64,000 nt of DNA from Laetmonice hystrix (GCA_965235115.1 OZ249451.1:1736001-1800000); one strand, 5' to 3'; positions 21,746 through 64,000 are shown, counted from the first letter of the stretch. The notes: generated by a model not told the origin, from the sequence alone. Numbers and translations: made by a program.

Positions 21746-21880
21746 TCCTGCAAGGCCCTTTGTAGGTTTATACCATAGGCATCATTTATTGCTATTACCC
21801 TTTCACTATTACCAGAGTACATGTTTCAGTAGACCCTGGGACAATGCCCCCAACTGACAACATCATTCCTGGGGAGTATA

Positions 21881-36032: not shown

Positions 36033-36552
36033 CATGTATACGTGAACAGGTGGAGGTATACGTGAACAGGTGGACATGTACCTGAACAGGTGGGCATGTA
36101 CCTGAACAGGTGGGCATGTAGGCTACCTGAACAGCTGGGCATGTACCTGAACAGGTGGGCATGTACCTGAACAGGTGGGCATGTACCTGAACAGGTGGAG
36201 GTATACGTGAACAGGTGGACATGTACCTGAACAGGTGGGCATGTACCTGAACAGGTGGGCATGTAGGCTACCTGAACAGCTGGGCATGTACCTGAACAGG
36301 TGGGCATGTACCTGAACAGGTGGGCATGTACCTGAACAGGTGGAGGTATACGTGAACAGGTGGAGGTATACGTGAACAGGTGGACATGTGCCTGAACAGG
36401 TGGACATGTACCTGAACAGGTGGACATGTACCTGAACAGTTGGACATGTACCTGAACAGGTGGGCATGTGCCTGAACAGGTGGACATGTACCACAACAGG
36501 TGGGCATGTACCTGAACAGGTGAACATGTACCTGAACAGGTGGACATGTACC
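36033..36552. repeat. 20-bp minisatellite, about 25 copies
   Basis: Unit tacctgaacaggtgggcatg. Confidence 0.95.
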
Positions 36553-41733: not shown

Positions 41734-41832
41734 GTACTTTAAAATCCGTGTTGAATGTTTTACTTCTTAAACTTTTTGTACTTCTGTTTTGTTATTGTGT
41801 GTCATTTTATATTTGTTGTTTCATTTTGTCAG

Positions 41833-41961
41833 CGCGGGTGCAACCTCCAGGCCCATCAAACATGGGACCTCCGCGGTCATCACGTGACCCTAAAAGGATG
41901 TCTCAACTTTTTCTTATTCTTGTGGTTTTCACCACGCTCTTCGGAACGGTTGTAACGCAAA
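41833..41961 (+). CDS. First coding exon: partial 5' UTR + signal peptide [21 protein letters not shown] (ATG at 41898)
   Basis: Acceptor tttcattttgtcAG at 41831-41832, a hydrophobic 21-codon N-terminus, and a strong phase-1 donor a|GTGAGT at 41962 that joins in frame to the vWA1 exon. Confidence 0.8.
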
Positions 41962-44900
41962 GTGAGTACAGGTTTCCCGTCCCCCTGCCAAAGCTCGAGA
42001 CGCTAGCGGAACGCTCTGACGTCATAATACGGCATAATCTCATCACATCCAATGACTTACCCATTGTCTCACAGTGTCTTACTAACCACTGTTCAGCCAG
42101 TTTAGACATTGTTAACGTAATTATTTACACGTCTTCACGGCAAAGCCAAATATTAAGTGTAGAAGGTGTCGATGTCCGTGATGGTGATGGTAATGGCTGT
42201 AATGAGCACATCAACCGTTTTTGTTTGGTTCCGAGAACTAAAGCATTACTACTTGCTGCTCTACCGATAATTTCCCATAACTGCCGGTATGTCCCCTTCA
42301 GGATGTACCCTCCAACCCCCAGAGAGCTTGCGAAAGTAGTTAACGCAAGCCTCAGTTGCCTTAAATATCCCATGAAAAGCTTTCGCCATGCCGGATTTGC
42401 TTCTTGTATCATGACTTGACGTTATGCTCATTTCTCTACACACCCATATGATCGCTTCTGTCTGATTGATTCTTCGCCTAGGGACCTGTTACGAACTGAT
42501 GGATTTAGGCATAATCATTGACGTCGGACAGACGTTGGAAAGCTGGAACAGCCAAGCCAAGCCTTTCATCAACAGTGTTGTGCAGCGGTTTACGATACGG
42601 CCGGAGCGTTGGGCGAGGATAGGCGTCCTCCAATATGGAGAGAGGCCTTATCCAGAGTTCTCGCGGCTCCTGAACGCCCAGTTAACCGTACGCAGTGCCA
42701 CTGATTTTATCACAAGAGTGGTCACACCACGTAGTGAAGATACCGATCAGGCTGGCATGATCCGCTACCTGAACACCGTCTTCTTCAGTACCGGGGGCTC
42801 GGCCAGAGCCTGGGCCCGTAATGTGGCTATCATCTTCACGGACGGTGAGGACAGGTCGCGACAGGTTCAGAGCGCAGTCCGAGAGGCACGTAGACTGGGA
42901 ATACAACTCATTGTGGTCGACTTGAACCGGTTTGAGACAGCGTTCGACGCGAACCAGAGAGCGATCGATGATCTGGACTCGCCTGTTCAGGTGGATCTCG
43001 GTAATCGAGGATCATGGCGTGGAACAATCGACGAGATTATCAATAGAATCTGCCCCCAAGAAAACCGCGGTAAATTCATTATTAGGATTTTTCAAAACTA
43101 GTTCTCAAACATAAAATCTCCATAACTCATCTTAAGGTTTTTTTTGTAGGAAATTACTACATTAAGCAAAATTGACAATTTCCTTTTCCCATTATAGCAT
43201 TATTATTATTATGATAGTATAACTCATATTAAGTAAACAACAAAGTAATCTTTGCCTAATTTAAAGATTTTCCAATAGCATAGCTAAGAATAGCAAGTGT
43301 AAAAGTATTTAGTTCTGCTAATTAATTAGAATTGATAATAAATCGTATGCCGCGCAGCGAATGAACGTTCCTCCTGTAGGCCTCCTGTAGGCTGAGTACT
43401 TGCGCGCAAAGTAGGTCAGCCTGGATTTGGTCGTGCTGGTTTGAGAACCCTCTCCTCTATCCTGCGCGCGCAACAGCGGCAGATTTCGGCGGCCCTGGCG
43501 GTCAAGCGTCTCTCCCCATTGTTTGTTTAGTTTCCATCTACTTGTTCATCGACAGTTACCGCTCACAGCGCGAACGCGATGGAACACGTTCATTACTCCT
43601 CAATTATAAAACTCTTCATCTTCAGAAAAAGGAATCACGGAATGGAATGGCTCTTGTTACATGTGGATAGACGTAGCCGTGTTTGTTTCAGTGCCTAGAG
43701 GACGCCGTTCTACAGCCGTCCCGCCACACCGGTCACCTGAAATCACGGTCCCCCTATGACTCGCTTGTCGCTGGTGATCACATCTGCCTATACTGTGTGC
43801 AGTTAATATTGCTACATTGGTAGTACCGATATATTTGATGCAATTCACTTAATTGCTTTGTTCCTCACGTCAAAATGACATTTTGGGCATTTCAAGCTGT
43901 AAACTGACGTGTTTTTTGGCAGTAAGTTATTAATGTTAGGCCTACCATCTACAATGGTGTGACATGCATCAAATGTAACGGAAACTATCCTCACTTGTAT
44001 ATATAGTGCATTTCATAGCTGAATGTCTTGTACAGCTTTCCTTGTGCAACTTGTGTTTGTTTATGCCTTCATTTTTGCGCGCTTATTATGCCTGTGCTGC
44101 GCTGCGCATGCGCAGAGAATGACCGGCGCTGAAAGCAGACCCGGGTCTGTGATTGGCTGGTCGGTGGACCGCGGGCCTGTGATTGGCTGCTCGGATGGAC
44201 CGGGCCTGTGATTGGCTGCTCGGATGGCGCGCGCTCAACGATTGGTCAGCTCACAATCATGTATACCCGCTGTACATTTTCAGCGGCCCCATGCTCCGAT
44301 CAAAGATACCAGGACTGGGCATTCTTGTTCCAAGGAAATGCCAACCTCAGGGACTTTGCTATTAGCAAGAATCTTTCGATCGAGGTTGTCAGATCACTGG
44401 ATATTGGTAGCAACCAGCACCACGTGGCCGCAGCACGGTACTTGGACAGGGGATCTGAATTCTTTGACCTCGCACGATACTCCAATGATGACGATCTGCT
44501 CAGGGCTTTGTCCAACCTTCGGGAGTCGCAAGGAAGCAACAACCTCGCCGCCGGGCTGAACTTCTTGACACAGAACACGTTCAGAGCGAATGCCCGAGGA
44601 AACCGAGCCAACTTTGCCAATGTTGCCGTTGTTTTTGTCACTAGCGAAATCCAGAACGAGCAAGAAGTTATTGTGGCAGCCGCCGGCCTCAAGAGCGTCG
44701 CCCGATTAATTGTAGTCGACCTCTCAAACCGGGTTTCTCCCAGGGTTTTGAATGCCATAGCCTCTCGCAGAGACTATGTCCTGAGGGCCGGCAATGCTTT
44801 CAGACTTCCCGAATTGCTCGATATGGTGTTCACTGATGTCTGCACGCCTGTCACTATCGGTAATAGACACAGATGATTTTGTTATTATACTTCGGTAGTC

Positions 44901-47900
44901 ATTGATATCTGAATAATTGGTTCTTCTAGCAATATACTTTAATATTTAAATTAATAATATCGCATGACCATCAGATAATGCTCTTGAAGATGTTTCCTAT
45001 GAACATACTGTAAATCTGTTAGTATTTGGCCCCCACGATAAGCTAACATTTAACTTTCGATGAATTACATATTAAGATATGCTCCATCATTGGTGATAAC
45101 ATCATAAATGTTATATTCACGTGTTTGTAGTCGTAACAATATGATATGGATGTTTTCTTTCCGAAATGTACGTGTACATTAACTTAATGCATTGACTCTA
45201 GTCGGTCCACCCGGACCAACCGGAGCCACGGGATCCCCGGGCCGACCGGGAGCTCAAGGACCGGCCGGACGACCCGGCACAGCTGGACCGAGAGGACCTG
45301 CTGGACCCGACGGACAGCCTGGCCGCCCAGGCACACCAGGTAAACAATATCTGTTTGACACAATGGTAACCTTTGTCATCTTTACCATTTTATTATCGCA
45401 TTAAATAATTTGCATTAAAGTTATTTTTATTTATTGACTGTAATTGATATAATAGTTAATTGGAGACGTTTTGGTTGGTTACAGGCTCACCCGGCACACC
45501 AGGCCGATCAGGAGCCACAGGTCAATCGGGTCGTGTTGGACCGCGAGGACCTGGGGGACCTCTAGGACCTGGGGGACCCCGAGGACCAGCTGGACCTTCT
45601 GGTCCTGCAGGACCTTTGGGCGGTGCTGGCCCGAGAGGTCCAGCCGGACCCCGTGGGCCTGATGGAACACGGGGAGAATCAGGCCTTCCTGGGCCATCTG
45701 GACCCGCAGGACCTCCTGGAAGGAGAGGCAATCGCGGAGAACCTGGAGTTGGCGGAGGTCCTGGAAGTACAGGAGCAACTGGCTTCCCCGGACGGCCGGG
45801 CGGCCCTGGACAGCGGGGATCACCGGGACCACAGGGCCCCGCCGGGGAATCCGGACCACCCGGGCCTCTTGGGCCTGGTGGACCTCTGGGTCCTGCTGGA
45901 GCCACTGGCCCGTCAGGACCTGCCGGACCAGCTGGACGTCCTGGACCACGAGGCGGGCTTGGCCCCGCTGGACGACAAGGAGCGAGGGGAGAGTCTGGTC
46001 CAGATGGAGGGGCTGGCCCTCCAGGACCAGCCGGACCTCGAGGACCAGCCGGACCTCTTGGAGGTGCTGGAAGAACAGGTGCAGCAGGACCTTCAGGTCC
46101 CCGCGGACAAGCAGGACCCTCTGGACCGGCTGGACCAGCCGGTCCGGCAGGACCAGCCGGAAGACAAGGAGGGACAGGAGGACCCGGAGCTCGTGGCCCA
46201 CGAGGTGAATCAGGATTACCTGGACCTGCTGGTTCACCCGGCCCTGCAGGAAGCCGTGGACAACCAGGGCCATCAGGACCACTCGGTCCATCAGGACTAC
46301 CTGGACCATCAGGACCTTCAGGACCCGCAGGACCGCCAGGGCCACTGGGGCCCGCTGGCCCGTCAGGCTCAACCGGAGCCCTTGGTGGACCTGGCCCACG
46401 TGGACAACCTGGACCAGGAGGGCCACTTGGACCTGCAGGAATAACCGGTTCTGCTGGACCGCGGGGACAGCCGGGACCACCGGGACCGTCTGGACCTTTA
46501 GGACCGTCAGGTATGCATCTCTTTCTCCCTGTCTCACTCTCTCCCATTTATCTCTCACACTTGTGGCTTTCAGCTTTTTTTTTATCTAAGACTGTCGTTA
46601 ATGATAAACCCTATAATTTGTTGCACAGGACCTGCTGGACCCTCTGGACCAGCTGGTGAACGAGGCGGGGCTGGTCCACCTGGACCGTCTGGACCATCTG
46701 GACCAGCTGGGGGCCCTGGATCAAGAGGAGAACGTGGACCATTGGGACCAGCAGGAAGGGCTGGACCTCCTGGACCAGCAGGCAAGTAACGTTCAATAAC
46801 TATTTATATTTATTCTTCAATAACAGGATACATGTTTAATGAAAGCATGTGTTTATATTTTTTATCTTATATCTTATCTTATCTTATCTTTTATCTCCCC
46901 CAATTACGTCCACTATGAGTAGGAACTCTATAAACTAGGAGACTCTCCCTATGTTTGTCATAGGCTTTGTTAGCTCATTATGACAAACTCGTTGCTGTTA
47001 CAGGAGAGCGCGGTGAGGGTGGACCGGCCGGGCCCTCTGGACCATCTGGACCTGCTGGGCCTGGTGGGGAACGAGGACCGGCTGGGCCTTCAGGACCATT
47101 AGGTCCAGCAGGACGACCTGGTCCATCAGGTCCATCTGGACCGGCAGGTGAAACTGGAGCCGGTGGCCCCCCTGGTCCATCAGGACCGCGTGGACCTCAA
47201 GGAGGACGGGGAGAGTCTGGACCACCTGGACCTGTCGGACCATCTGGACCTGCAGGGGAACGAGGCTCAACAGGAGGCCCTGGACCAGCTGGACCATCAG
47301 GACCGTTAGGACCCGCTGGGCCGAGGGGAGGAACCGGCTCCCCAGGCCCACGAGGAGAACGAGGAGAGGGCGGAGAAGCTGGACCAGCAGGACCAGCTGG
47401 ACCACGTGGATCACCAGGTTCACGTGGCGAGGTTGGACCTTCTGGATTGCCCGGACCACAAGGTATGTCACTGGTTTGTGATCTTATAGATCTTGTGATC
47501 ACTGATTATCTTCCTTTTGGATACTATGTTGGTATCATTTAGAAAATAATAGATTAGACACACTAACTGAAAACTGTCCCCGTCTTATACCTTCAGGAAC
47601 CCGAGGCGAGCCTGGCCCTGCCGGACCAGGTGGACCACGTGGTCCCGCTGGCGAACGTGGCCAGCCTGGTGAATCTGGACCTGCAGGACCGTCAGGCCCT
47701 GCTGGACCATCAGGACAGCGTGGTCAGCCCGGTCCAGCCGGGGCTGTAGGCCCTGCTGGTCCCGTCGGATCGGCCGGACCTGCCGGAGCTACCGGAGGTC
47801 CTGGAGCCAGAGGAGAAGCTGGCGTTGCAGGACCTGTCGGACCTGCCGGACCACGGGGAACCCGGGGAGAAGGTGGCCCTGCTGGACCAGCTGGTGAATC

Positions 47901-50900
47901 TGGACCCGCAGGACCTGCCGGACCGAGAGGTCCCGCTGGCGGAAGAGGCGGGCCCGGACCAGCTGGACCTCAAGGCTCAAGAGGAGAGAGAGGAGAGGCA
48001 GGGCCCGCAGGCCCAGCAGGACCATTGGGACCTGCCGGTGAGAAGCCATTTCATGAATAATTCAGAATTCGTCTCTCAATACAACTTGTAGTAATGAGTA
48101 AGATGACAATACACGTTGACATAATTCAGATACTAATTGTTATTAAATGTGGTATTACTTTTATACAGGACCATCCGGACCTGCTGGACCAGGGGGGGAA
48201 CGAGGTCAGCCTGGTCCCGCAGGACCACTTGGACCATCAGGACCAGCTGGGACAACTGGAAGCCTTGGCCCAGCCGGCCCAAGAGGAGGCCCAGGCCCAA
48301 GTGGACCCCAAGGATCTGCTGGAGCCACTGGCGAGCCTGGACCATCTGGACCACGAGGACAGCCTGGACCATCTGGACCCTCTGGTCCATCTGGACCAGC
48401 AGGACCTGCTGGTGAACGAGGACCTTCTGGGTTACCTGGACCTGCCGGATCAACCGGTGGCCCCGGACCAGCCGGTCCAACCGGTGCTGTAGGCAGAGCC
48501 GGAGATAGAGGACAACCTGGACCTGCTGGACCACAAGGCAAGGACGTTTGTCTCTGGAGTTGATAATAATCTAATGAACAAATAACATTACCATTATTGT
48601 TACAACTCTAACCAGAGCAGCGATTCTTATATCTTTTACCATGTACTAATATCCATTGCCATATTAAGCAATGCAATTTTGTATCTTTTGAACAGGATCG
48701 GCAGGTCCAGCCGGACCTTTGGGAGGTGTTGGCCCATCTGGGCCGCGTGGATCGCCTGGTCCACGTGGATCCGCTGGACCATCAGGACCTGCTGGACCGG
48801 CAGGAGAGCGTGGGGCACCTGGACCGGCTGGTTCGACTGGCGGTCCCGGTGGACCCGGACCCGCTGGACCGGCAGGAGAACGTGGTCCACAAGGAAGCCG
48901 TGGTGTCCCTGGTGGTCCTGGATCACGGGGTGAAGCTGGACCAGCAGGACCGAGAGGAGAGTCAGGGCCAGCAGGGCCAAGCGGACCAAGCGGCCCAAGA
49001 GGCGAGGCTGGCGAGTCCGGACCTGCGGGACCTGCAGGATCACGAGGTGGGCATGTGCAAGACACATCTATTACTCAACACTGTTAACAATGTTCAGTAT
49101 TCAACAGCTTAATTTATAAGACATAGGAAACTGCTCGAATGTTATTGTTACGAAGCTATAGCATCTGACTATGGTTTCCAGGAGCACCTGGCCCTGGAGG
49201 ACAGAGAGGTCAACCAGGTGCACGAGGTGAGCCTGGTCCAGCCGGACCACAAGGTGAACGTGGTGGTGCAGGACCAGCTGGACCGAGAGGAACACCCGGC
49301 ACCGCTGGGCCAGCTGGCCGAACAGGAGCAGCTGGACCATTGGGACCTGCAGGACCTGCAGGGCCCCGTGGACAACGTGGTGAAGGTGGAACAGCGGGAG
49401 AACAAGGTTGGTATTGTAAACATTTTCATGATTTGCACAGTCTTTAAGTCTCTCCTTCATCATAATCTGGAATTGTGGGATTTTTTATTTAATTTTTATT
49501 TTAAAACTTTTGATCAATACCCACTTTACTTTCAGGCCAGCCTGGACCTGCTGGACCAAGAGGACAACGTGGTGAAAGCGGCCCTGCAGGAAGCCCAGGA
49601 CCAGCTGGACCCGCAGGTCAGCGAGGAGAGGCTGGACCTGCAGGCCGTGCAGGTCCCCAAGGATCTGCGGGAACTCCCGGCAGTCAGGGACCAACTGGCG
49701 CATCTGGAGCAGCTGGTCCTGCTGGACCAAGAGGCCAGCCAGGTCCGGCGGGACCTCTTGGACCCTCTGGACCGGCAGGAGGAGCAGGACCTCGTGGTGA
49801 AAGGGGAGAACCTGGACCAAGTGGCCAACCCGGTTCAGCAGGCCCTGCCGGTAAGTTCTGCCTTCTTTGATTTGTTACTTGTTTCCTGGCGCTGTTTGTA
49901 TTGACCATCAAGTTAATGTTGTTATTTCCATCTGAAAGGGCCTGTTGGACCCGGAGGACCTCGTGGAGAGCGTGGCGAAGGAGGATCTCCTGGACCTGCT
50001 GGACCTGCTGGACCCTCAGGTCCAGCTGGACAGCCAGGGACCAGAGGAGAAGCTGGACCTGCTGGACCGGCAGGACCCCGCGGGGGTGTCGGTGAGGCAG
50101 GACCTGCTGGACCAGGTGGAAGCCGAGGTGAACGAGGACCTGCAGGACCGCCAGGACCTGCTGGACCAGCAGGACCGCGATCTGAAAGAGGAGAGGCCGG
50201 ACCTCCCGGTCCATCTGGGCCAGCCGGACCATCAGGACCAGCAGGACCTGCAGGACCTCAGGGAGAGCAAGGAACACGAGGCGAAGCAGGAAGGCCTGGA
50301 CCACAAGGTATGTTCCACTCCTGCCAGGGAAAGTGATGGAGGATGACTGTGAGCACATCATCTTCATTATTCTTACACTGAAATGGTAAATAATTACTCA
50401 TTATGTCGACTATGTGGATTTTAATAGTGAACATCACTTACACCATTGTTTTCATCGCTTTTAGGCGGCCCTGGACCTTCCGGTCCCCTAGGACCAGCAG
50501 GAAGACCAGGACCATCTGGCCCCGCTGGACCTCGTGGACAACCAGGAGAATCAGGACCAGCTGGAAACCGTGGAGAGCCTGGACCCGCAGGACCATCTGG
50601 ACCCTCAGGACCAGCTGGACCAGCCGGCCCGACTGGAGCTGCTGGCCCAGCTGGATCACGTGGTCAGCGTGGAGAGGGAGGACCGCAAGGATCCCCTGGA
50701 TCACCAGGATCACGTGGAGAGCGAGGACCTGCTGGACCTGCTGGACCGAGTGGACCCTCTGGACCAGCTGGACCAGCTGGATCTGCGGGAGAACAAGGTC
50801 CTCGTGGTGAAAGTGGACTTCCTGGCCCCGCTGGTAGTGTAGGACCTGCTGGACCCCTTGGCCCCGCAGGACCTGCTGGACCTTCAGGACCTGGAGGCCC

Positions 50901-53900
50901 CCGTGGAAACCGTGGAGAACAAGGACCTGCAGGAGAACGTGGACAACCTGGACCTGCTGGGCCCAGTGGGCCAAGAGGACAGCCTGGTCCTGCTGGCCCT
51001 TCGGGACCAGCTGGAGAAGCAGGATCACGAGGGGAATCTGGACTTCCTGGTCCATCAGGTACATTGTCCGGTCACTCCTGACATTCGAGTAGTGATTTAA
51101 TCTATGATACGAGGAAATTAAAGTATTAATGACAATTAATGATGCCTGGTTGATTAGTTAATTGATAATTAATAGTATCTATTATTATTAATAGGACCGG
51201 CTGGAGGTCCTGGTCCAGCTGGAAACCGCGGAGAAGCCGGACCACCTGGCCCTAGTGGACAACGTGGAGAGAGAGGCCCACGCGGAGAAGCTGGGAATGC
51301 TGGTTCCCCTGGCCGTGACGGCCAACCCGGAGCAGCTGGACCAACCGGAGCGGCAGGCCCATCTGGACCTGCAGGACCCGGTGGTCCTAGAGGCGAACCA
51401 GGAGCACCTGGACCTGCTGGACCTGGAGGACCCCGTGGAGAGCGGGGAGGTCCAGGACCTGCAGGGCCCGCTGGTGAAGCCGGCCCTGCAGGACCTGGGG
51501 GGCCACGAGGACAACGTGGTGAACCAGGAAGACAAGGAACAAGAGGTAAACGTGGTAACATTTAGGCCCTATTCCGTCATGCATCTCAATAATACGACAA
51601 GAAACTGGTATCCCCAGTTTTATTAATTAACTACATCAGTATATTAGTAAAGGCATAATGTATAAATTTCAGAGCATCTGGTACATCATTAGCAATAATT
51701 GTCACCAAGCAATCCGGCAAAAGATAATAATGCTTAATCACTCTTCTCACTATAGGTGAAGCTGGCCCAGCCGGACCTCAGGGTGGCCGGGGAGAACTTG
51801 GCCCTGCTGGACCTGGTGGACCACGTGGAGAAGCAGGCCCCGCTGGACCAGCAGGACCTGCTGGTGAACGTGGACAGCAAGGATCAGCTGGATCCCCAGG
51901 ACCTCAGGGTCCCTCTGGCTCACCTGGTACAAGAGGTGAACAAGGAGAACGAGGACCTGCCGGACCTCTAGGACAACCAGGTCAGTGTACCTCCTTCTAC
52001 GGCATACACACAATTTCTAAACTGAAGACTTGTGGCATATCTTAAATCTAGTATAATAATATAATATATAATATAATAGATTTTTAAAAAACGGTCCAGA
52101 TTCTACATTCAGACTCAAGCATCCTGATGTAAAGGGATTATTTTTTAAATTCGATTAAAATTTAATATTTTATATTCTAGGCCCCAGCGGACCTGCTGGT
52201 TCCCCTGGCCAGAGGGGAGAAGCTGGACCTGCTGGACCTGCAGGACAACGTGGAGGCCCTGGTCCCAGAGGAGAAGCAGGTACACCTGGCGGTCCCGGTG
52301 AACGTGGTGAAGCTGGACCTGCTGGCCCAGCCGGTCGCGCTGGCCCATCAGGACCGGCAGGCCCAGCTGGAGAGAGAGGCGAGGCAGGACCATCTGGATC
52401 CCCTGGATCACCAGGACCAAGAGGAGAGGCAGGAGGCCCAGGACCCGCAGGCCAGCCTGGTGAAGCCGGCCCTGCAGGACCTGCGGGGCAACGAGGACAA
52501 CGTGGTGAAGCAGGGCAACCTGGTTCAGCTGGTAGGTTTATAAGTATTGATGAAAAAACACTTTCAAAATTATTCCTGTACTGAAGTATTCTCTTAATTT
52601 ATATTGATGGAGACATTGGAACTCTTTCTGAGAAAGATATTATTCGTTTATTTCAGGTGGTATTGGACCAGCGGGACCTGCAGGACAACGCGGGGAGGCT
52701 GGACCTGCCGGACGACCCGGTGGCAGAGGTGAGGCTGGCCCTGCCGGACCTGCCGGATCACCAGGTGAACGGGGACGACCAGGACCATCTGGCCCCGCTG
52801 GACCAAGTGGTCCTGCTGGGCCTGCAGGAACACGAGGAGAACAGGGAACGAGAGGAGAATCTGGATCCGCAGGACAGCCAGGTCCTTCTGGACCAGCTGG
52901 ACCCCGTGGAGAAAGAGGGGAAGCTGGACCTGCTGGTCCTGCCGGCCAACGCGGAACGCCAGGATCAAGAGGCGAACCTGGCAGTCCAGGTCCCGGCGGT
53001 AATAGAGGAGAAGCCGGACCGTCTGGACCGGCTGGACCAAGTGGCCCAGCTGGACCAGCCGGACCAGCTGGCCAGCCCGGAGAACAAGGACCCCGTGGAA
53101 CTCCTGGATCTGCTGGAACTCAGGGACGTCCCGGTGAGCGTGGTGAGGCAGGACCTTCCGGACCTGCCGGACCTTCAGGACCCTCAGGACCACGCGGAAC
53201 ACGTGGAGAGCCTGGTCAAGCTGGAGCAGCAGGTATGAGTCTTAATGCATGTCAAATGTAATGTCAAATGTAATGTCAAATGTAATGTCAAATGTAATGT
53301 CAAATGATTCGGGCAGAAGATTCCCCCTTTTAGAAAATGAGTAAAACATTATTACTCTATGAAATATAAACTTATTATAGGTGCAACTGGACCTGCTGGA
53401 CCTGCCGGACAACGAGGAGAATCTGGACCAGCTGGACCAGCTGGACAGCGGGGAGAAGCCGGCCCTGCAGGCCCTGGTGGACCACGTGGTGAGGTAGGAC
53501 CCCAGGGTTCAATTGGATCGCCTGGACCCAGTGGCCAACCCGGCCCTGCAGGCCCACGGGGAGAAGCTGGACCAAGGGGAGAGCAAGGCCAACCTGGTAC
53601 CCCAGGTATGTGATCTTTATGTGATTTATATATTCTTAAACCTACCCCTGTGTTTGAGTTTTAATTTAAATTTAAGTTCTCAAAGGATGATTCCTCACAC
53701 TCGTTTACTCACTTTGTTTTCAGGAAGTACTGGTATTTCTGGACCTGCTGGGCCGCGGGGAGAACCCGGCTCTGCAGGTCCCGCAGGCCCCGCAGGCCCA
53801 CGCGGTGAGCCAGGCCCACCTTCAACCAGAGGGGAACGGGGAGAGCAAGGACCAGCTGGTCCAGCGGGATCTCCAGGACCCGCCGGTCCAGCCGGAGGAC

Positions 53901-56900
53901 CAGGACCAAGAGGTGAAGCTGGAATTCGTGGCGGAAGAGGTGAAGCCGGAGCACCTGGGCCCCGTGGAGAGGTTGGTCCAAGTGGACCGGCCGGACCTGC
54001 TGGTACATCAGGACCATCTGGCCCAGCCGGACCAAGAGGAGAACCTGGAGAGCGAGGACAAGCCGGACTTCCAGGACCCGGAGGTATGTATCATTGAAGG
54101 TTTAATCATAGACAACTTGATGTTTAGTGGATTGTACAAGAGATTTGGTATAACATGGGATGTTCTCCATTCAGGTCCAAGTGGTCCACAAGGTCCTCAG
54201 GGAAGCCGAGGAGAACCGGGTCCGGCTGGAGGACCCGGTCCGCGAGGAGAACGTGGTGGGCGTGGAGAGGCAGGACCTGCTGGTGAACCAGGAAGAGCTG
54301 GTGAACGTGGTTCCCCCGGCCCTGCTGGACCAGCTGGTGCGTCAGGGCCCTCAGGTCAGCGTGGACAGCCGGGAGAAAGAGGCGAACAAGGACCAAGAGG
54401 AGAGGGTGGAAGCCCAGGATCACCAGGTGATGATAGAATATAAACTACTGATGATTATTCAAACCTTAATCTGTCAGCATGTTTACATTGTCTTCAGTAG
54501 TTTTCACAGAAACGTCGTTATTCTTGTAGGATCTGATGGCAGACCAGGTGGTCCGGGACCTCGTGGAGAGGTTGGACCGGCAGGTGAACCAGGGTCTGCT
54601 GGACCTGCAGGACCAAGCGGACCAAGTGGACCTGGTGGTCCACGAGGTGAACCAGGCAGCCGTGGAGAACGTGGCGAGGCCGGACCTGCAGGACCATCAG
54701 GACCTGGAGGACCCAGAGGAGAAGCTGGCCCAGCTGGGCCAAGAGGAGAAGCGGGACCTTCAGGACCATCAGGTATGTTGACCCGGAATCCTTTCGTCCT
54801 GTTTTCATTCAAAGAAATCATAAGGGGAATGACATCTGGGGGGGGGGGGGGGGGGGGGTGTTCCTCATCATGTCGTTAGCTTGTCGTATCGTTAACTCCA
54901 ATGAATTTTCAATGGGGATTTTAACGCACGACAAGATAACGACAGATGAGGAACGCACCCCAGCTGAGTCAGTGCCGTATTTCTTTTACCGAATTATTAT
55001 TTGATACAATAATTATGTCTAACGTATAGCAAAGAATAAAATACTTAACACAATATGACCTTTTCCATGTTTATTTTTAAGGACCGTCTGGACCTGCTGG
55101 ACCTGCGGGACAACCTGGAGAGGCTGGACCAGCAGGACCAGCTGGATCACGTGGCGAGCCTGGACCAAGAGGAGAGGCCGGAACTCCAGGATCAGCTGGA
55201 AACCGTGGTGAGCCTGGTGCCCCAGGACCTTCGGGACAACCTGGATCTGCCGGGTCCCCTGGAACACGGGGAGAGCGTGGCCCTGCAGGCGAACGTGGAG
55301 GTCAAGGAGAACGTGGAGAAGCTGGACCGGCAGGAACACCAGGTAGGCAAGAATAGAATCGAATGGAAGTGACATATAGACTACGCATAATCAGTATGAC
55401 ATATGAGTTCATGTGCCTAACGAGAGGTCCCCCTTTTCAATTATTTTCTTTGATGCCTGATTTGTTTTCGGGCAAAAGGCATGTCTTAAAACTTCCACCT
55501 GCAACATAATATTTTTTTTCAAATATGCGTTGCTATTTTTTTCTAACAGGTTCAGCTGGACCTGCTGGACCTGCTGGACCACGAGGTGAGACAGGCCAGC
55601 CAGGAGCAGCCGGACCATCTGGACAGCCAGGCCCTGCAGGACCTGGTGGGCCAAGAGGAGAAGCTGGACCTGCAGGAGAATCAGGACCGGCAGGCCCTGC
55701 CGGACCGGCTGGACGTCCAGGCGAGCGAGGTCAACCAGGTCCCGCTGGCGCGAGTGGCGTTCCAGGAGAGGCTGGGGCCAGAGGTCTTCGTGGTGAACAA
55801 GGTGCACGAGGAGAAGCCGGCACACCTGGATCAGCAGGTAGGACACTTTCGACATTGGATAGCCATCCCCCTAAGGCGTCAGGAAAATTCTGCTTAGATG
55901 TAAGAGTAAATGTTCCCACACTTTCCCATATTCGTGATTATGCTAAAGTAGAAAATCTTTGTAATATATATTTTGTGGGGTTTTTCATCAGGTCAACCTG
56001 GACCTGCTGGAGAGGCTGGACCGGCTGGACCATCTGGACCCCAAGGACCTGCAGGACAACGAGGAGAAGGTGGACCCAGAGGAGAAGCTGGACCTGCCGG
56101 CAGTCCCGGATCTCGAGGAGAACCGGGATCACCTGGTCCATCTGGACCTTCTGGTCCAGCTGGACCTCAAGGTGGTCGTGGAGAAAGAGGACCTGGAGGA
56201 TCCGCTGGTCCTCGGGGTGAGGCTGGAACTCCAGGTTCACGTGGTGAGCCTGGACAACGTGGTGAACAAGGCCCTGCTGGAACACCAGGTCGCCCTGGTG
56301 AAAGAGGTCAACCTGGCTCTGCTGGCTCTGCTGGACCAGCTGGACCTGCAGGACCCCGAGGAGAACGAGGAGAAGCTGGACCACAAGGTCCAGCAGGATC
56401 TCCTGGTCAAGCTGGGGAACCAGGCCGACCAGGTAAAATATGTTAATGGTTGCAGTGTTTTTGTTGTTGTCGAGGAACATATATGCTGATTGCTAGGTTT
56501 ATGTACCTTCAAAGGGCAAGTAGTGAACCATAACTTAACCACACAATTCTCATGAAGTTTCATTTATACGAATACAAAAACCTCTGACACGGCTCATAAT
56601 CCTTCTAATACAGGCGAAGCTGGACCGGCTGGTGCTCCGGGAGTAGGCCGTCCAGGCCCCGCTGGCCCTGCTGGAGCCATTGGGGAAGCTGGACCTGCAG
56701 GTGCACCAGGACCCGCTGGACAGAGAGGACAGAGAGGAGAAGGAGGCACACCTGGATCCCCTGGCCCAAGAGGTGAAGCTGGAAGTGCAGGACCTCAAGG
56801 ACCACAAGGAGCCCGTGGAGAGGCAGGAAGCGCTGGCCCTGCTGGCGAAGCTGGACCGTCTGGCCAAGCTGGTCCTGCAGGACCACAAGGAGCACCGGGC

Positions 56901-59900
56901 CAAAGAGGCGAAGGTGGCCCGAGAGGAGAGGCTGGACCAAGAGGAGAAGATGGCACACCAGGCAGTGCTGGTAGGCCAGGAGAGCGTGGACAGCCTGGGC
57001 CAGCCGGACCGCAAGGAGAGGCCGGACGTCCTGGACCAGCTGGACCAGCTGGAACCCGTGGAGAACGTGGACCAAGAGGAGAGGCAGGAACAGCAGGAAA
57101 TGCTGGCTCTCCTGGATCACCAGGTAAGCAGTGATTACGTATAATTGATTGATCTCATCTCTGACTGATTTAAACAAGAACATCAATTAGAACATTTGGA
57201 TGATACATTAAAATACAAATGTTTTGTAATACAGGGCGCGATGGATCCCCTGGTGCCGCTGGTGAACCTGGAAGAGATGGCAGCGCAGGCGCTCCCGGTG
57301 CGCGAGGAGAAGCTGGACCCCGTGGTGAGCCCGGCACAGCTGGTACACCAGGCACAGCCGGAGAACGTGGACAGCCTGGACCATCTGGACCAGCAGGATC
57401 TCCTGGATCTCAAGGTCCAAGAGGCGAGGCAGGGTCACCAGGTCCACAGGGAAGCCGTGGAGAGGCAGGTCCTCAGGGATCACGCGGCGAGGCTGGACCC
57501 AGAGGAGAATCTGGTACTCCAGGAACACCCGGTCAACGAGGCGAACGGGGAGAAGCAGGTACACCAGGCTCAGCAGGATCTCCTGGACCAAGTGGTCCAG
57601 CTGGACCTAGAGGAGAACCTGGTGCGGCAGGAACTCCAGGTGAACGTGGCGAGGCAGGAACTCCAGGGTCACCTGGTAAGTATAAGTATGCAGGCAGTGA
57701 CTTTGGGTCGAGTAATGTCATAAATAATAATCGATTAGTAAATCCAACATGGGAGGGACGAACTTCTAAATTTCGGCATTAATGATTTCAGGAAGAGATG
57801 GTTCACCTGGTGCGCCTGGACCACGTGGCGAAGCCGGAACGGCCGGAACACCTGGAACACGTGGAGAAGCTGGTCCAGCTGGACCAGCAGGGGCACGTGG
57901 AGAAGCTGGCCCAAGAGGCGAAGCAGGAGAAGCAGGCCGTCCCGGAGAACGGGGTGAGGCAGGGACACCAGGATCTGCTGGTGCACCTGGACCACGTGGT
58001 GAAGCCGGAACACCAGGATCACAAGGATCACCTGGTTCACCTGGACCTGCAGGACCAAGTGGACCTCGTGGTCAACCAGGATCCAGGGGTGAAGGTGGCC
58101 CAAGAGGAGAGGCTGGCCCGAGAGGTGAGGCCGGAACACCGGGATCGGCTGGTCGACCAGGAGGGCGTGGAGAAAGAGGACCAGCAGGTCCTGCGGGAGA
58201 AGCTGGCAGTCCAGGACCAGCGGGATCACAAGGGGCACGTGGAGAAAGTGGACCTCGTGGCGAGGCAGGAAGTCCTGGAGCACCTGGGTCAGATGGAAGG
58301 CCAGGTATGTGTGGTCTATAATACATCTATAAGACTTTCATTATGAAAAAAGGATTGTTAAAAAAAGTTTACAAAGCCGCTTACAAAGTGCACAAATCAG
58401 TAACAAAATGATATATAAGAAAGGTATTAAATATTAAGATAAAATAAATTTCTGTTAAAAGGCGAAGCAGGACCTGCTGGGCCCGCTGGCGCTCTTGGAC
58501 CAGCTGGACCTGCTGGCCCACGAGGAGCACGTGGTGAGGCTGGCCCTCGGGGAGAGCCTGGTACACCAGGTGCACCTTCACAGCGAGGGGAACAAGGAGA
58601 ACAAGGACCTGCTGGACCTTCTGGACCTGCTGGATCCCCAGGACCTCGTGGTGAGCGGGGCCCTGCTGGAGAACGTGGTGCTCCAGGAGAGAATGGCCGA
58701 CCAGGAACTCCTGGCCAGCGTGGAGAGGTAGGACCCTCTGGACCTGCTGGATCCGCTGGACCATCAGGACCTGCTGGACCGCAAGGTGGTAGGGGTGAAG
58801 CTGGACCTCGCGGAGAGCCAGGCCAACGTGGAGAACCAGGCACAGCTGGAACACCAGGTTATAGACCCTTTTGTATTTAAAAGTAAAATAGAAAATCAGC
58901 TGAGAACAAATTTATTGCTTAAAACTTTATGGAATGATATAACTTTAATGATATAATGATATTTAATTATGTATTTCTATCAAACAGGATCGGCTGGACC
59001 TGCTGGACCTCGTGGGGAACGAGGAGAGGCTGGACCAGCTGGATCAGCTGGACCTTCTGGCCCAGCAGGAAGACCAGGATCAGCTGGAACACGTGGTGAA
59101 CAGGGTCCTCGTGGAGAAGCTGGAACACCTGGATCACCTGGTCAGCGAGGAGAAGCTGGACCCGCTGGACGTGATGGCTCACCTGGAGCACGTGGAGAAG
59201 CAGGACCAGCTGGTACCCCTGGTAGGGCAGGAGAGGCTGGCCCAGCTGGACCACAGGGAGCACGGGGAGAAGGAGGACCGCGTGGCGAGTCTGGGCCAAG
59301 AGGAGAGGCAGGAACTCCAGGAACAGCTGGACGACCTGGACCAGCAGGGCGAGCAGGATCACGAGGAGAACAAGGACCTCAGGGAACCCGAGGGGAACCT
59401 GGAAGAGATGGTTCACCAGGTGGACCTGGTGCACGTGGAGAAGCTGGCCCACGAGGTGAAGCTGGAACTCCTGGAAGTGCAGGAAGTCCCGGAACACCAG
59501 GTATGTAGCGTTTTATACGAATGACAAATCAATTATCCTTATTTTCTTTTTAACATGAAGTTTTATTTGGTAAAATTCAGTGAAAGTTTTTTTTACTGAC
59601 TTTCAAAATATCTGACAGTTATGAATTCGTGTTATAGGCGAAGCTGGACAACCTGGATCGCCAGGACAACGTGGAGAGGCTGGCCCTGCTGGATCACCTG
59701 GCACGCGTGGAGAAGCAGGACCACGTGGAGAGGCTGGTACTCCTGGAACGGCAGGAACACCCGGAGAAAGAGGTAGTGCTGGACCTTCTGGACCTGCTGG
59801 ACCTAGCGGGCCTGCAGGTACACGTGGTGAGGCTGGTCCAAGAGGCGAGCAGGGTCCGCGTGGAGAGGCAGGAACACCAGGACAGAGAGGAGAACCCGGA

Positions 59901-62900
59901 GCTCGGGGAGAATCTGGACCTGCAGGAACTGCAGGAAGACCAGGGGAACGAGGTCAACCAGGTTCAGCTGGATCTGCTGGTCCAGCTGGACCAGCTGGAC
60001 CACAGGGCACACGAGGTGAAGCTGGAACTCCCGGAACACCAGGACAGAGAGGAGAAGCTGGCCCGCAAGGAAGTGCTGGTATGTTATTGAGGATTATATA
60101 TGATACCTTACACATAAACATGGCAGAAAGAAAATTACTGATCATTCATATCATATTTGGATTAAAAGTAATATATTTTGCTTGTTGACAGGCCCAGCAG
60201 GTCAACCTGGATCCGCTGGACAGCGTGGAGAACGTGGCGAACCTGGTGAGGCAGGACGCCCCGGAACCCCAGGAGGTCGAGGAGAAGCAGGACCTGCAGG
60301 AGCTGCAGGATCCCCAGGCACACAAGGACCCAGAGGTGAACGTGGTGAACCAGGAACGGATGGTTCTCCCGGATCACCTGGCTCCAGAGGAGAAGCTGGC
60401 CCTCAAGGACAGGCTGGCTCCCCTGGCTCTGATGGGCAACCAGGTCCCCAAGGACAACGCGGAGAACCTGGTCAAAGAGGAGAGCCCGGAGCACGTGGTG
60501 AATCAGGCACTCCAGGGACTGCTGGATCGCCAGGAAGAGATGGTATAGTTATATAGTTATATATTAGTTATGAACACATTTGCAGATTGTTATCGAATGT
60601 AACGTTGTCGCCTTTGACATCGTTATGAATTTCTGTTTTATAGTAGGAAAATTAATTCAAATTAACCAAATTAAATGGGTTATCAGGATCACCTGGCCAA
60701 CAAGGATCTCCTGGTACGCGAGGAGAAGCAGGACCTCAAGGCCCACAAGGTCAACGTGGAGAACCTGGAGAGCGAGGAGAGGCTGGAACTCCTGGACAGG
60801 CAGGTCGTCCTGGAGCACGTGGTGAGGCAGGACCCTCCGGATCTCCTGGATCAGCAGGACCATCAGGTCCAGCTGGATCTCGGGGTCTACCTGGAGAACG
60901 TGGAGAGCCTGGAACGAGAGGAGAGGCAGGACCTCGTGGCGAGGCTGGTAAGAAGTCAGATTTTAATTTAAAATATGGCAGGATCACAATTATTTTACCA
61001 GCAATTTGTATTCTTAGCTTTTTATGACCGTGCCATTCTTGTAATTTAAAAAATCACTTCAAAACATTCTCACCCCCAAAAATGTTTTCAGGTACCGCTG
61101 GCTCCCCTGGCCCTGCTGGCCAGAGAGGAGAACCTGGTACACAGGGTTCTGCTGGACAGAGGGGAGAAGCTGGACCTGCGGGTCAAGCTGGTCCAGCAGG
61201 CCCACAAGGTCAAAGAGGTGAAGCCGGGCCACGTGGAGAGGCTGGAACCCCAGGTTCAGCAGGACAACCTGGACCAAGGGGAGAGGCTGGAACCCCAGGA
61301 TCAGATGGTCAACCTGGTCCAAGTGGGCCAGCTGGACCACAGGGCCAACGAGGAGAACCAGGTACACGAGGTGAGCCTGGTGCCAGAGGAGAACCAGGAA
61401 CCCCAGGAAGTGCAGGAACTCCAGGATCAAGAGGAGAAAGAGGACCAGCAGGACCCTCTGGACAAGCAGGATCTGCAGGCCCTGCTGGTGCAGCTGGACC
61501 TCGTGGAGAACCTGGCAGTGATGGAGCACCAGGACGTGATGGCTCTCCAGGTAACTTTAATTTTGGTTATTATGATCTAATGTGGTAAAGACATTGTAAT
61601 CTATGCTGTTCTGAACATTGGAAGCGCATTGATATTTTGCTTAAAATGCTGTCTATATCTTTTAAAGGAGCACCTGGTCCTTCTGGGCCAGCTGGACAAC
61701 GTGGAGAAGCTGGATCTCCGGGAACACAAGGACCCCGAGGTGAGGCAGGCCCCCGTGGTGAAGCTGGAACTCCTGGATCTGCTGGTCAACCTGGAAGTAG
61801 AGGATTGCCTGGAGAACGTGGTCAGGCAGGTACACCTGGATCTGCTGGACCAGCTGGATCAGCTGGACCTCGTGGACAACGTGGAGAGCCAGGTACCAGA
61901 GGTGAACCAGGGGCAAGGGGAGAACCAGGCAGTCCAGGAACTGCTGGTTCTCCAGGCCCCAGAGGAGAGGCAGGAACTGCAGGATCCCCTGGTGCTGATG
62001 GCCAACCAGGAAGCCCGGGAGGAAGAGGTGAAGCAGGACCAAGAGGCGAAGCAGGACCACGTGGAGAGGCTGGCAGTCCAGGTGGAGCTGGGCCTGCAGG
62101 ACCCGCTGGATCACCAGGCCAGCGTGGTGAGGCAGGACCTCAAGGAGCCCCAGGAAGTGCAGGGCAACCAGGCTCACAGGGACCGAGAGGAGAGTCAGGC
62201 CCTGCTGGACCTGGAGGTGCGAGAGGTGAACCAGGCCAGAGAGGAGAAGCAGGGACACCTGGATCTGCAGGTCGACCTGGAGAGAGAGGACAGGCTGGAT
62301 CACCTGGACCTGCAGGACAGGCTGGTTCACCCGGAACCCGAGGAGAGGCAGGCCCACGAGGTGAGCAAGGACCACGTGGGGAGGCAGGAACACCTGGATC
62401 CCAAGGAACGCCTGGCCAAAGGGGAGAGGCAGGACCTGCAGGACAATCTGGTCCTGCAGGACCATCTGGCGCTCCTGGGCCAAGGGGAGAAGCAGGTGCT
62501 CCTGGAGCACCTGGCCGTGGAGAACAAGGTCCACGTGGAGAAGCTGGAACACCTGGTACTCCAGGTAGACAGGGCGAAAGAGGAGCCGCCGGACCTGCTG
62601 GTCCATCAGGACCACAAGGACCACAAGGTGGACGTGGTGAACCTGGTCAGCGAGGAGAAGCTGGACCAAGGGGAGAAGCAGGATCACCTGGTGGTGCTGG
62701 TAAGTTGAAATGAATATTCTCCACGCTTTTTATGATTTTCTTTACTCGTAATTCGATTAAAATAAACGATACTTCTAAATTCTGTATAATTTTTTTATTT
62801 TATTTATGACCACCATTTCTTGATGAAAAGTCATATAAATAATGTGGCATGAATGTGTAGGTCCGGCCGGCCCTCAGGGTCCACAAGGACAACGAGGAAC

Positions 62901-64000
62901 ACCGGGCACTGACGGACAGCCAGGCTCAGATGGTCAGCCAGGATCACCTGGCGCACGAGGTGAACCTGGTGCAGCTGGAACACCAGGCGCCCGTGGAGAG
63001 CCAGGTCAGCGCGGCGAAGCAGGAACTCCAGGACAGGCTGGAAGGCCAGGAGAACGAGGAGAAGCTGGTCCACAGGGTGCAGCTGGTTCAGCAGGCCCAT
63101 CTGGCCCTGCCGGATCCCCTGGACAACGGGGTGAAGCTGGACCACGCGGAGAGCCCGGATCAGCTGGTGCACCTGGTAAGATTTGGAAAATTAACAGTTC
63201 ATGTCTTAGCTGAAAATAATTTAGGGACTCGATTGGTTCTGTTCAGACAATACAAGATTTTGTTTTACTGTCGTGAAGCTTATACATTAAACTTTTGACT
63301 GGGGTTTCCTGTTTCTTGTTTAATGTAAATAATTTTGTGAATGTGTTTCATTTTCAGGTCGCGATGGTCAGCCTGGAGCTGCTGGCCCACGTGGTGAGCC
63401 AGGAACAGATGGACAAGCAGGAAGTAGAGGAGAAGCAGGACCACGAGGTGAGGCAGGACCACAAGGGTCTCCTGGTCAACGTGGTGAAGCCGGTGCACCT
63501 GGATCACCTGGAAGCCGTGGAGAACCAGGCACTCCTGGATCAGATGGCTCCGCTGGACCAGCTGGACCAGCCGGTACTCGTGGAGAACCCGGACAACGTG
63601 GTGAAGCTGGACAACGTGGTGAACCTGGTGAGGCAGGTCGTCCTGGTACTGATGGCCGTCCGGGTGAGCGTGGCGAGGCTGGGCCTGCAGGTTCAGCTGG
63701 TCCAGCTGGACCCCGTGGAGAGGCTGGCCCAGCTGGAGCGCGAGGAGAGCCTGGTCAAGCAGGCGAAGCTGGATCTCCTGGACGAGATGGTAAGAAGCAG
63801 TCTTGTTTTCAATTTTACTTAATTGGAAGAATCATTATATTTCCTACTGATACGATTAAACCCTTTGCTGATCATAACAAATATTGCTTGAAAAGGATCA
63901 CCTGGAGCGCAAGGCCCCGCAGGACCACGAGGAGAACCTGGACTTGCTGGGCCCGCTGGTGCTGTAGGACCATCTGGACCTCGTGGCGAAGCTGGCACAG
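41898..64000 (+). CDS. Giant secreted collagen (signal peptide + 2 vWA domains + at least ~1,530 Gly-X-Y triplets), 3' end beyond window; candidate annelid-type cuticle collagen
   Basis: Manual splice model: join(41898-41961,42482-43069,44284-44859,45202-45339,45485-46510,46629-46781,47004-47462,47597-48037,48169-48537,48696-49046,49182-49406,49536-49850,49939-50307,50465-51058,51195-51545,51756-51980,52181-52531,52657-53232,53381-53605,53724-54083,54175-54426,54530-54772,55082-55342,55550-55837,55992-56432,56614-57123,57235-57675,57792-58304,58462-58857,58988-59500,59638-60078,60192-60542,60687-60947,61092-61550,61668-62699,62861-63175,63358-63789,63896->64000). Every intron is phase 1 with an AG acceptor and a GT donor (two GC). 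The joined frame is stop-free (5,003 codons) and keeps Gly-X-Y register across all junctions. Confidence 0.95.
42482..43069 (+). CDS. Exon encoding vWA domain 1
   Basis: Translation [18 protein letters not shown]...ARIGVLQYG...NVAIIFTDG...IQLIVVDL...IINRICP shows the vWA strand motifs (D-L-x-h-h-h-D, R-I-G-V-L-Q-Y, h-h-h-TDG) and Cys at both ends. Acceptor cgcctAG, donor g|GTAAAT. Confidence 0.88.
44103..44245. promoter_or_regulatory. Intronic cluster: NRF1-type palindrome plus four inverted CCAAT boxes in a 29/30-bp repeat
   Basis: TGCGCATGCGCA at 44103-44114; ATTGG at 44152, 44182, 44211, 44241. Motif match only; function unproven. Confidence 0.35.
44284..44859 (+). CDS. Exon encoding vWA domain 2
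   Basis: Translation [17 protein letters not shown]...[14 protein letters not shown]...[14 protein letters not shown]...[15 protein letters not shown]...LIVVDL...LNAIAS...DVCTP matches the vWA pattern (IG-x3-V, AGL, R-x4-VAVVFT, L-x-x-IAS) with flanking Cys. Acceptor acattttcAG, donor g|GTAATA. Confidence 0.85.
45202..64000 (+). CDS. Collagen triple-helical region: 35 exons, 13,782 coding nt, about 4,590 residues, incomplete at window end
   Basis: Continuous Gly-X-Y from the Gly codon at 45204. All internal collagen exons are exact multiples of 9 nt except 56614-57123 and 61668-62699, each 3 nt short because of one Gly-X-Gly interruption. Introns are 88-309 nt and AT-rich. Confidence 0.95.
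53248..53306. repeat. 12-bp intronic repeat (aatgtcaaatgt), about 5 copies
   Basis: atgtcaaatgtaatgtcaaatgtaatgtcaaa... Confidence 0.85.

Follow-up and report, generated by a model that had tools for sequence, protein, structure and literature searches.

A 39.4-kb Laetmonice hystrix gene for a giant collagen with a predicted C-terminal membrane anchor, and its convergent paralogue

Results

Gene A and its course through the window

The DNA analysed here is a window of 64,000 nucleotides from Laetmonice hystrix (GCA_965235115.1 OZ249451.1:1736001-1800000), which corresponds to G000:C21:1736001-1800000 in a genome assembly of 627 Mb and 35 contigs. Its downstream part holds the beginning of a collagen gene, here termed gene A, that reads off the end of the window. 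Followed to its end, gene A spans 39.4 kb and 62 exons (G000:C21:1777898-1817345) and finishes 17.3 kb past the window end, so that the window contains the first 60% of it; positions beyond 64000 are given as "ext", the window numbering extended downstream. A second collagen gene, gene B, lies convergent to it. Gene A is a single expressed gene that sets a head of two von Willebrand factor A (vWA) domains on a rod of 2.5 micrometres, and both its architecture and its convergent paralogue are conserved in other assemblies.

A regular-expression scan of all six frames located Gly-X-Y runs of at least six triplets on the plus strand only, from 45204 to the window end, with short antisense runs, attributable to chance, as the sole exception. 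The raw open reading frames (ORFs) total 1,556 Gly-X-Y triplets in the window. These runs were chained through GT/GC..AG introns under the rule that glycine must occupy every third residue. Each junction had a single solution that keeps the Gly register, and all of them are in phase 1 with the Gly codon split as G|GT...AG|GN; in-frame alternatives 3-6 triplets downstream exist for the acceptors at 48696, 58462 and 60687, and the counts are accurate to about 1%. The resulting model comprises 38 exons and 4,995 codons without a stop, with the reading frame still open at 64000. The first-pass annotation of this DNA had described 38 exons in one open frame of 5,003 codons, comprising a signal peptide, two vWA domains and about 4,590 helical residues in about 1,530 triplets. 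The recount agrees closely, placing ~4,585 residues, ~1,527 triplets and four interruptions in the helix within the window, and both vWA domains were recovered by Pfam and the signal peptide by its hydrophobic core.

Exon 1 (41898..41961, plus strand, as for all exons of gene A) carries the start codon and the signal peptide and ends at a phase-1 donor (AAA|GTGAGT) in frame with exon 2; an alternative in-frame ATG at 41862 would add an extra basic n-region to the signal peptide. Exon 2 (42482..43069, phase 1) encodes vWA domain 1 (Pfam PF00092, E 9.4e-17) with an imperfect metal ion-dependent adhesion site (MIDAS) motif (D-V-G-Q-T), and exon 3 (44284..44859, phase 1) encodes vWA domain 2 (PF00092, E 2.4e-16), which is devoid of a MIDAS motif (FLFQGNANL). 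The triple helix starts with 16 triplets in exon 4 (45202..45339) and continues through 34 pure Gly-X-Y exons (exons 5-38, 45485..64000) separated by phase-1 introns of 88-309 nt. Exon 5 matches the Pfam Collagen family (PF01391) at E 5e-41, and exon 38 is cut by the window end and runs on to 64228.

Exons 5-10 lie at 45485-46510, 46629-46781, 47004-47462, 47597-48037, 48169-48537 and 48696-49046, and exons 11-16 at 49182-49406, 49536-49850, 49939-50307, 50465-51058, 51195-51554 and 51756-51980. They are followed by exons 17-22 at 52181-52531, 52657-53232, 53381-53605, 53724-54083, 54175-54426 and 54530-54772, and by exons 23-28 at 55082-55342, 55550-55837, 55992-56432, 56647-57123, 57235-57675 and 57792-58304. 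Exons 29-34 occupy 58462-58857, 58988-59500, 59638-60078, 60192-60542, 60687-60947 and 61092-61550, and exons 35-38 occupy 61668-62699, 62861-63175, 63358-63789 and 63896-(64228). Two of the introns are of the GC-AG type: that at 46782..47003, whose donor (CAG|GCAAGT at 46781) gives the sole local junction keeping frame and Gly register, and that at 48538..48695 (donor AAG|GCAAGG at 48537). Within the window a glycine is replaced in GPR-SER-GEA (50181..50189, after 413 triplets), GPP-STR-GER (53822..53830, after 696 triplets) and GAP-SQR-GEQ (58578..58586, triplet 1061), while the fourth interruption is a two-residue unit, GRG-EQ-GPR (62522..62527, triplet 1411). The third and fourth are in register with LGR and TR, respectively, of the paralogue.

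The complete gene and its product

Beyond the window the helix reaches ext 80177, where the last helix exon ends in ...GLGAL-G|GTAAGT. The acceptor ctctttttctag|, 581 nt past that exon, opens the final exon in the same phase 1, and the final exon reads ALGQKMAKGEQDVMREQNILKKMSAKSNT, FAVGMAAWAGIVTIALIVIVAIVY, RRIK and about 140 more residues before a stop codon at ext 81343-81345. Two exon pairs outside the window have phases that are ambiguous but mutually compensating. The whole coding sequence (CDS) measures 27,741 nt without internal stops and specifies a protein of 9,246 amino acids and 844 kDa, in the order signal peptide, vWA, vWA, helix, a helical neck of ~28 residues, one transmembrane (TM) helix and a cytoplasmic tail whose last residues are -SFL. 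The full helix extends over residues 411-9051 (8,641 residues, 2,875 triplets) and contains five interruptions, namely the Gly replacements SER, STR, SQR and AER, the last at triplet 1723, and the two-residue EQ. At 0.286 nm per residue the rod length is computed, not measured, as 2.47 micrometres.

It had been anticipated that the chain, once extended past 64,000 to its stop codon, would reveal a C-terminal trimerisation domain. The stop codon was reached and no such domain was found before it; instead the chain closes with the neck, the TM helix, which lies 165 residues from the C-terminus, and ~140 residues of conserved cytoplasmic tail. No Pfam family scored above cut-off in the C-terminal exon, and the terminal exons contain no Pfam domain besides the N-terminal vWA pair. 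Judged by this order of features, the primary product is predicted to be a type I membrane protein and not simply a secreted rod.

The helix draws on a very restricted set of residues. Over the whole helix the X position is occupied by Pro (28%), Glu (23%), Ser (13.5%), Gln (13%), Ala (7%) and Thr (7%), and the Y position by Ala (30%), Pro (24%), Arg (24%), Gln (9%), Ser (6%) and Thr (1.6%). A single Lys, no Cys and two aromatic residues are present in the entire helix; G-P-S or G-P-A accounts for 15% of its triplets, and Pro occupies 56% of X positions at the helix's N-terminal end but ~10% in its C-terminal third. This long, Pro-rich Gly-X-Y repeat matching PF01391 places the product in the collagen superfamily. 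A lag scan along the helix was flat (0.206 +/- 0.014), demonstrating no long-period repeat. The rod is therefore not a recently amplified array, and recent tandem-repeat amplification was ruled out as its origin by the absence of a peak in that scan.

Transcript evidence

Four runs from one sample contain the locus DNA; of these, X4, which has no tissue on record, consists of 59 Mb of contigs and X1 is a DNA run. The share of sampled words present in X4 was 0.37 over 41800-45400, as compared with a modelled exon fraction of 0.38, and 0.70 over L003:6900-9400, as compared with ~0.73 for exons plus 3' untranslated region (UTR). Because these word shares follow the modelled exon fractions, X4 behaves like a transcriptome. 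One X4 contig of 2,206 nt spans the last six exons at the modelled sites, cut ambiguity allowed (L003:4001-10000), in blocks at 4500-5655, 5756-5968, 6107-6324, 6715-6859, 6990-7176 and 7758-8044 of L003. The join from the helix to the TM exon in this contig skips 581 nt with GT..AG borders; the anchor exon is therefore part of the collagen mRNA. None of the six-exon joints is present in the DNA run X1, and X4 depth is zero inside the 390-nt intron.

Past the stop, at L003:8800-10000 (ext 81800-83000), RNA word depth reaches 5,000-74,000, as against ~1,165 across the coding exons. This rise could reflect a long, 3'-biased UTR or a separate abundant transcript lying between the two collagen genes.

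Conservation in other assemblies

A search with vWA domain 1 against 1.8 billion representatives returned exon-sized homologues at 67%, 38%, 32% and 30% identity and no full-length giant protein, the remaining matches being generic multi-vWA proteins. A protein atlas returned generic vWA clusters only, and in the protein collections searched the homologues found from other assemblies are all single-exon fragments. Similarity of the vWA domains to collagen VI, integrin I domains and vWF is of a generic kind only (single-domain E ~1e-7), and their matches in the PDB are distant, to the integrin alpha1/alpha2 I domains and to collagen VI alpha3.

At both ends of the gene, exon sizes recur in other assemblies. 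Two loci in other collections, L011 (Logan) and L014 (ENA), encode vWA domain 1 and then a second vWA domain without a recognisable MIDAS motif, followed by exons of 16, 115, 17, 53, 50, 42, 40, 26 and 36 triplets. The matching exons of gene A have 16, 115, 17, 52, 50, 42, 40, 26 and 36 triplets, with the sizes of exons 5-12 agreeing with the L014 orthologue within one triplet. The homologue with 67% vWA identity and that with 72% tail identity lie on the same 502-kb contig. At a further locus, L022, the last nine exons have 36, 69, 68, 61, 130, 25, 25, 17 and 20 triplets, exactly the sizes found in gene A, and a B-type TM exon lies convergent to them 9 kb downstream. Judging from this retention of A-type 3' exons beside a convergent B-type TM exon, the A/B gene pair is old.

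The JGI contig Ga0123360_1057123 is 27.7 kb long and intronless, and a single frame in it runs through 1,113 triplets, neck, TM helix and tail to a stop. The contig resembles a transcript from a relative, equal in size to the CDS described here; the gene calls placed on it are off-frame with GTG starts. A metagenome scan with the vWA domain 1 alignment for the 5' end of this transcript returned no relative.

These comparisons bear on whether the model could be an artefact, in which permissive splice modelling had chained shorter collagen genes or a repeat-expanded misassembly into one frame. Collagen repeats readily give rise to assembly errors, a concern that PMC12403961 shares, and the direct RNA joints all lie outside the window. 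Several observations speak against such chaining: the helix has no internal periodicity, all 57 helix introns preserve frame and Gly register, exon sizes agree with those of other species at both gene ends, a 27.7-kb intronless transcript contig of a relative stands beside the 27.7-kb CDS found here, and no promoter-like gap, stop or signal peptide lies inside the model. An artefact is accordingly very improbable and close to refuted, and the description of gene A as one continuous gene is retained.

A search with the tail exon returned 12 homologues at 35-72% identity. Invariant among them are the TM core, W..VT..L.V, SDAES, D[KR]SSVVD, LD[ST]ELN, F.HA and the terminal G[AS]SFL; the -SFL end is present in 13 of 13 sequences and would fit a class I PDZ ligand. 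Pfam contains no family matching the tail. AlphaFold2, run on the tail alignment, predicts the neck and TM segment as one continuous helix (pLDDT 75-94) and the tail as mostly disordered. The tail profile identifies three copies within this genome, namely A, B and a weak one on contig 1. A third exon of this type, at L025 (G000:C1:30259266-30262460; ORF 1393-1866), has a short linker following an acceptor, then the TM helix MIAMVVWVIIVTIALVVIGVL and a tail that is acidic and rich in Ser.

The convergent paralogue

Gene B (G000:C21:1823794-1869566, ext 87794-133566) lies on the minus strand, 6.5 kb past the gene A stop. Its chain is encoded by 67 Gly-X-Y exons with 2,865 triplets, as compared with 2,875 in A, so that the two totals are within 0.4% of each other. 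One vWA exon lies upstream of the helix (Pfam E 8e-8), and the last helix exon is joined by a phase-1 splice, as in A, to a neck/TM/tail exon reading ...LGVMLGTWFGILSLALIVILVVIYKRLK...YNRSSVVDL.... The B tail is shorter and diverged, without the LDSELN and -SFL motifs, and a search downstream of its TM exon revealed no exon carrying either motif. Near ext 139.7k, beyond an intron filled by a 3.7-kb minisatellite (ext 135.2-138.9k), lies a possible signal-peptide exon of chain B.

The two genes have approximately 40 intron positions in common. Chain B is interrupted at triplets 1059 (LGR), 1409 (two residues, TR) and 1721 (AQR), and the counterparts in chain A fall at triplets 1061 (SQR), 1411 (two residues, EQ) and 1723 (AER); in both chains these three are spaced exactly 350 and 312 triplets apart. 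Non-Gly identity between the chains is ~24%, as compared with 16-19% for out-of-register alignments at offsets of 6 to 300 residues, although an offset of 3 again gives 24%. Equal length and register in spite of such divergence would be expected from selection on co-assembly, or at least on a common structural ruler. Because chains so greatly diverged in sequence agree in length and in the register of three interruptions, the comparison suggests that A and B co-assemble into one heterotrimer.

The same data can also be read as two independent homotrimers, with length and register inherited from common descent and kept by a common structural role. Each chain has private interruptions, and B differs from A in its single vWA domain and in its shorter, diverged tail, all of which would be compatible with separate molecules. 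Independent homotrimers would not lead one to expect the 350/312-triplet spacing of matching-type interruptions to be kept exactly at ~24% non-Gly identity and with lengths within 0.4%, nor the convergent pair to be kept in a species whose A vWA domain 1 is merely 32% identical; in addition, Nereis cuticle collagen reportedly consists of two distinct subunits. We consider homotrimers somewhat unlikely and favor the A/B heterotrimer.

Other features of the region and genome

No gene was recognised in the 41 kb that precede the collagen. This region contains minisatellite arrays at 16641-17500, 20280-21081, 21306-21822 and 36023-36646, in which the repeat units leave long ORFs uninterrupted on either strand, and a run of 183 N at 4727-4909 that represents an assembly gap or a masked stretch. 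Elsewhere in the genome, at L015 (G000:C6:27493897-27497247), a single-exon globin is encoded on the minus strand (1429-1998). It begins with MGCSVS, which could be acylated at the N-terminus as in globin X. Among named proteins it is closest to molluscan 'neuroglobin-like' sequences and to a Capitella globin (50-57% identity), which places the genome in Lophotrochozoa without separating annelid from mollusc. Globin exons resemble neuroglobin in the PDB and are not diagnostic, cryptochrome exons proved too conserved for discrimination, and the annelid erythrocruorin linker family (PF16915) matched nothing here, nor in the control genomes.

Discussion

Since the 1960s-90s, textbooks have treated annelid cuticle collagen, which forms the longest collagen rods known, as an oddity; it was studied at the protein level in Nereis, Arenicola, Alvinella and Riftia by Kimura/Tanzer, Gaill, Mann and Timpl. 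It contains almost no Lys or Cys, and Pro/Hyp is frequent at X before Ser or Ala. Earthworm cuticle collagen reportedly includes Gly-Hyp-Ser sequences, and the frequent G-P-S/G-P-A triplets of gene A recall them. To our knowledge, the genes, domain structure and assembly mode of cuticle collagen have never been worked out.

To date, no gene is a better candidate than gene A for encoding the micrometre-long cuticle collagen that marine worms produce. The reading that we favor, with a probability of roughly 60%, is that one expressed 39.4-kb gene encodes a type I membrane collagen that forms an A/B heterotrimer, is brought into register by its anchor and constitutes the micrometre-long cuticle collagen of a marine worm. 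According to this proposal the neck and membrane anchor, which are made last, would hold three chains in register in the membrane of the endoplasmic reticulum; zippering of the triple helix would follow in the C-to-N direction, with the anchor substituting for the missing C-propeptide. Such a registration device would explain the absence of the expected trimerisation domain. Chains A and B would assemble as one heterotrimer and be delivered to the apical surface of epidermal cells, where the tail motifs may serve in sorting or cytoskeletal attachment. The rod would be the micrometre-long cuticle collagen, with the vWA pair as the distal globule seen by rotary shadowing, and it would either stay tethered or be shed by cleavage near the membrane. 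More tentatively, and at somewhat less than even odds, we propose that these proteins represent an undescribed class of type I, C-terminally anchored collagens, in which neck and TM helix replace the C-propeptide for A/B registration and a PDZ-type tail directs or holds the molecule at epidermal microvilli. Such a class would offer a molecular handle on how the orthogonal cuticle 'plywood' of annelids is laid down.

Several points weigh against the cuticle collagen proposal. We know of no permanent membrane anchor in the classic descriptions of extractable cuticle collagen, and in the tail alignment the neck displays no visible furin-type or other conserved cleavage site. The direct RNA joints cover the last six exons only, which lie outside the window, and the in-window junctions have word-share and comparative support. 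The Gly substitutions of A at triplets 413 and 696 have no counterpart in B, a one-residue insertion of B at triplet 109 has none in A, and a complex prediction for the A2B neck and TM segments scored 0.07, which is evidence neither way. The proposed assignment to the cuticle rests on length, composition and architecture, and the sequence comparisons place the source in Lophotrochozoa at large; a 'col6a6' vWA-collagen that is an epidermal marker in Platynereis is a lead only (PMC11574210).

Alternatively, the same protein may not be the bulk cuticle fibre but a permanently anchored, 2.5-micrometre cell-surface tether. It might connect microvilli or attachment sites to the cuticle, act as a basal-side or muscle-attachment collagen, or be a component of the chaetal follicle or tube gland. 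The conserved tail with its short linear motifs, together with the PDZ-class-I-like -SFL in all 13 sequences, would indicate an anchor that is functional and not a mere folding aid, and a conserved shedding site is not visible. The nematode apical attachment proteins MUA-3 and MUP-4 are likewise type I with a vWA domain. The helix length, on the other hand, equals that of measured cuticle collagen rods, and the scarcity of Lys, Cys and aromatic residues, in addition to the two chain types, fits the biochemistry of extracted cuticle collagen; RNA word depth also looks high, though depth is a poor measure. A permanent tether is in our estimation unlikely, and the cuticle collagen remains the preferred identity of the gene A product.

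If the gene pair does encode cuticle collagen, its chains would have known sequences, its globule would be identified as two vWA domains, and it would become clear why no C-propeptide was ever observed. An anchor polarity opposite to that of every characterised membrane collagen would amount to a new solution to trimer registration, and the folding, transport and orientation of a 2.5-micrometre, 2.5-MDa trimer by a cell would become testable. Gene callers fragment genes of this kind (62 exons, 28-kb CDS), which should serve as a caution for annotators.

Comparison with known collagens

Annelid cuticle collagen is the closest known system. Gene A resembles it in the micrometre-long helix, a putative globule at one end, the near absence of Lys and Cys, Pro at X before Ser or Ala and the two chain types, as described for Nereis; it differs in that no membrane anchor or cytoplasmic tail has been described for cuticle collagen in the literature searched or known to us. 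Riftia cuticle collagen is Thr-rich at Y, whereas Thr occupies merely 1.6% of Y positions in gene A, and a Riftia-type, Thr-rich cuticle collagen was ruled out on this ground. Polychaete cuticle collagen rods are 2.4-2.5 micrometres long with a terminal globule (PMC11766948). The computed 2.47 micrometres of gene A lies within the ~1.5-2.5 micrometres typical of cuticle collagen helices, and its two N-terminal vWA domains would supply a globular domain at one end. The first-pass annotation had proposed a gene for a giant annelid cuticle-type collagen with the vWA pair as its terminal globule. What stands of this is that a single gene is involved, that its full length fits the 2.4-2.5-micrometre class better than the partial count did, and that two vWA domains occupy one end of the rod, their identity with the observed globule being plausible; the C-terminal trimerisation domain that it expected was not borne out.

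The accompanying view that such giant collagens are characterised mainly as proteins is by now outdated. Predictions of 8-9 thousand residues were published in 2025 (PMC12403961), and the bare claim of a gene for a micrometre-long collagen is no longer new. Table 1 of that Alvinella genome paper lists collagens of 8,859 amino acids in A. pompejana and 7,719-8,689 amino acids in Paralvinella, and also one in Eisenia andrei; collagens of 7.7-8.9 thousand residues have so far been reported from annelids only (PMC12403961). Gene A is similar to these in size class and in proline content (G-P-Y 33-40% and G-X-P 21-33% there, 28% and 24% here). The published predictions, however, give length, repeat count and Pro percentages only, without domain architecture, anchor, gene pair or exon structure.

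Collagens XIII, XXIII and XXV (membrane-associated collagens whose triple helices are interrupted, MACITs), collagen XVII and the nematode cuticle collagens are all type II membrane proteins with a cytosolic N-terminus, and some membrane collagens are freed by proteolysis (PMC4678570, PMC10538796). Gene A shares with the MACITs, XVII and C. elegans COL-99 a single TM helix and a coiled-coil-like neck beside the membrane. Its predicted polarity is reversed, with a cleavable signal peptide and a C-terminal anchor in place of an N-terminal cytosolic domain and signal-anchor TM helix, and its helix, nearly free of interruptions, is 10-40 times longer. The literature searched contained no account of a collagen anchored at its C-terminus.

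With collagens VI, VII, XII, XIV and XXVIII gene A has in common the joining of vWA domains to a collagen helix, and the collagen VI alpha3 vWA domain is among its best PDB matches, although the gene A domains resemble integrin I domains about as well as collagen VI vWA domains. It differs from all of these in the absence of FN3, TSPN, Kunitz and C-terminal vWA domains, the terminal exons encoding two N-terminal vWA domains only, and in a helix that is 5-25 times longer. The earlier statement that the gene fits neither the fibrillar nor the type IV nor the FACIT (fibril-associated collagens whose triple helices are interrupted) architecture was borne out. Gene A departs in defining features from the fibrillar collagens, the FACITs, collagens VI, VII and XXVIII and the MACITs. 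Fibrillar procollagens are defined by a COLFI C-propeptide and a helix of ~1,014 residues. Gene A has no such propeptide, a helix 8.5 times longer, no Lys to serve in lysyl-oxidase cross-links, and phase-1 introns that split the Gly codon, as opposed to 54-bp phase-0 exons. What it shares with the fibrillar procollagens is a long uninterrupted helix whose folding is presumably nucleated at the C-terminal end.

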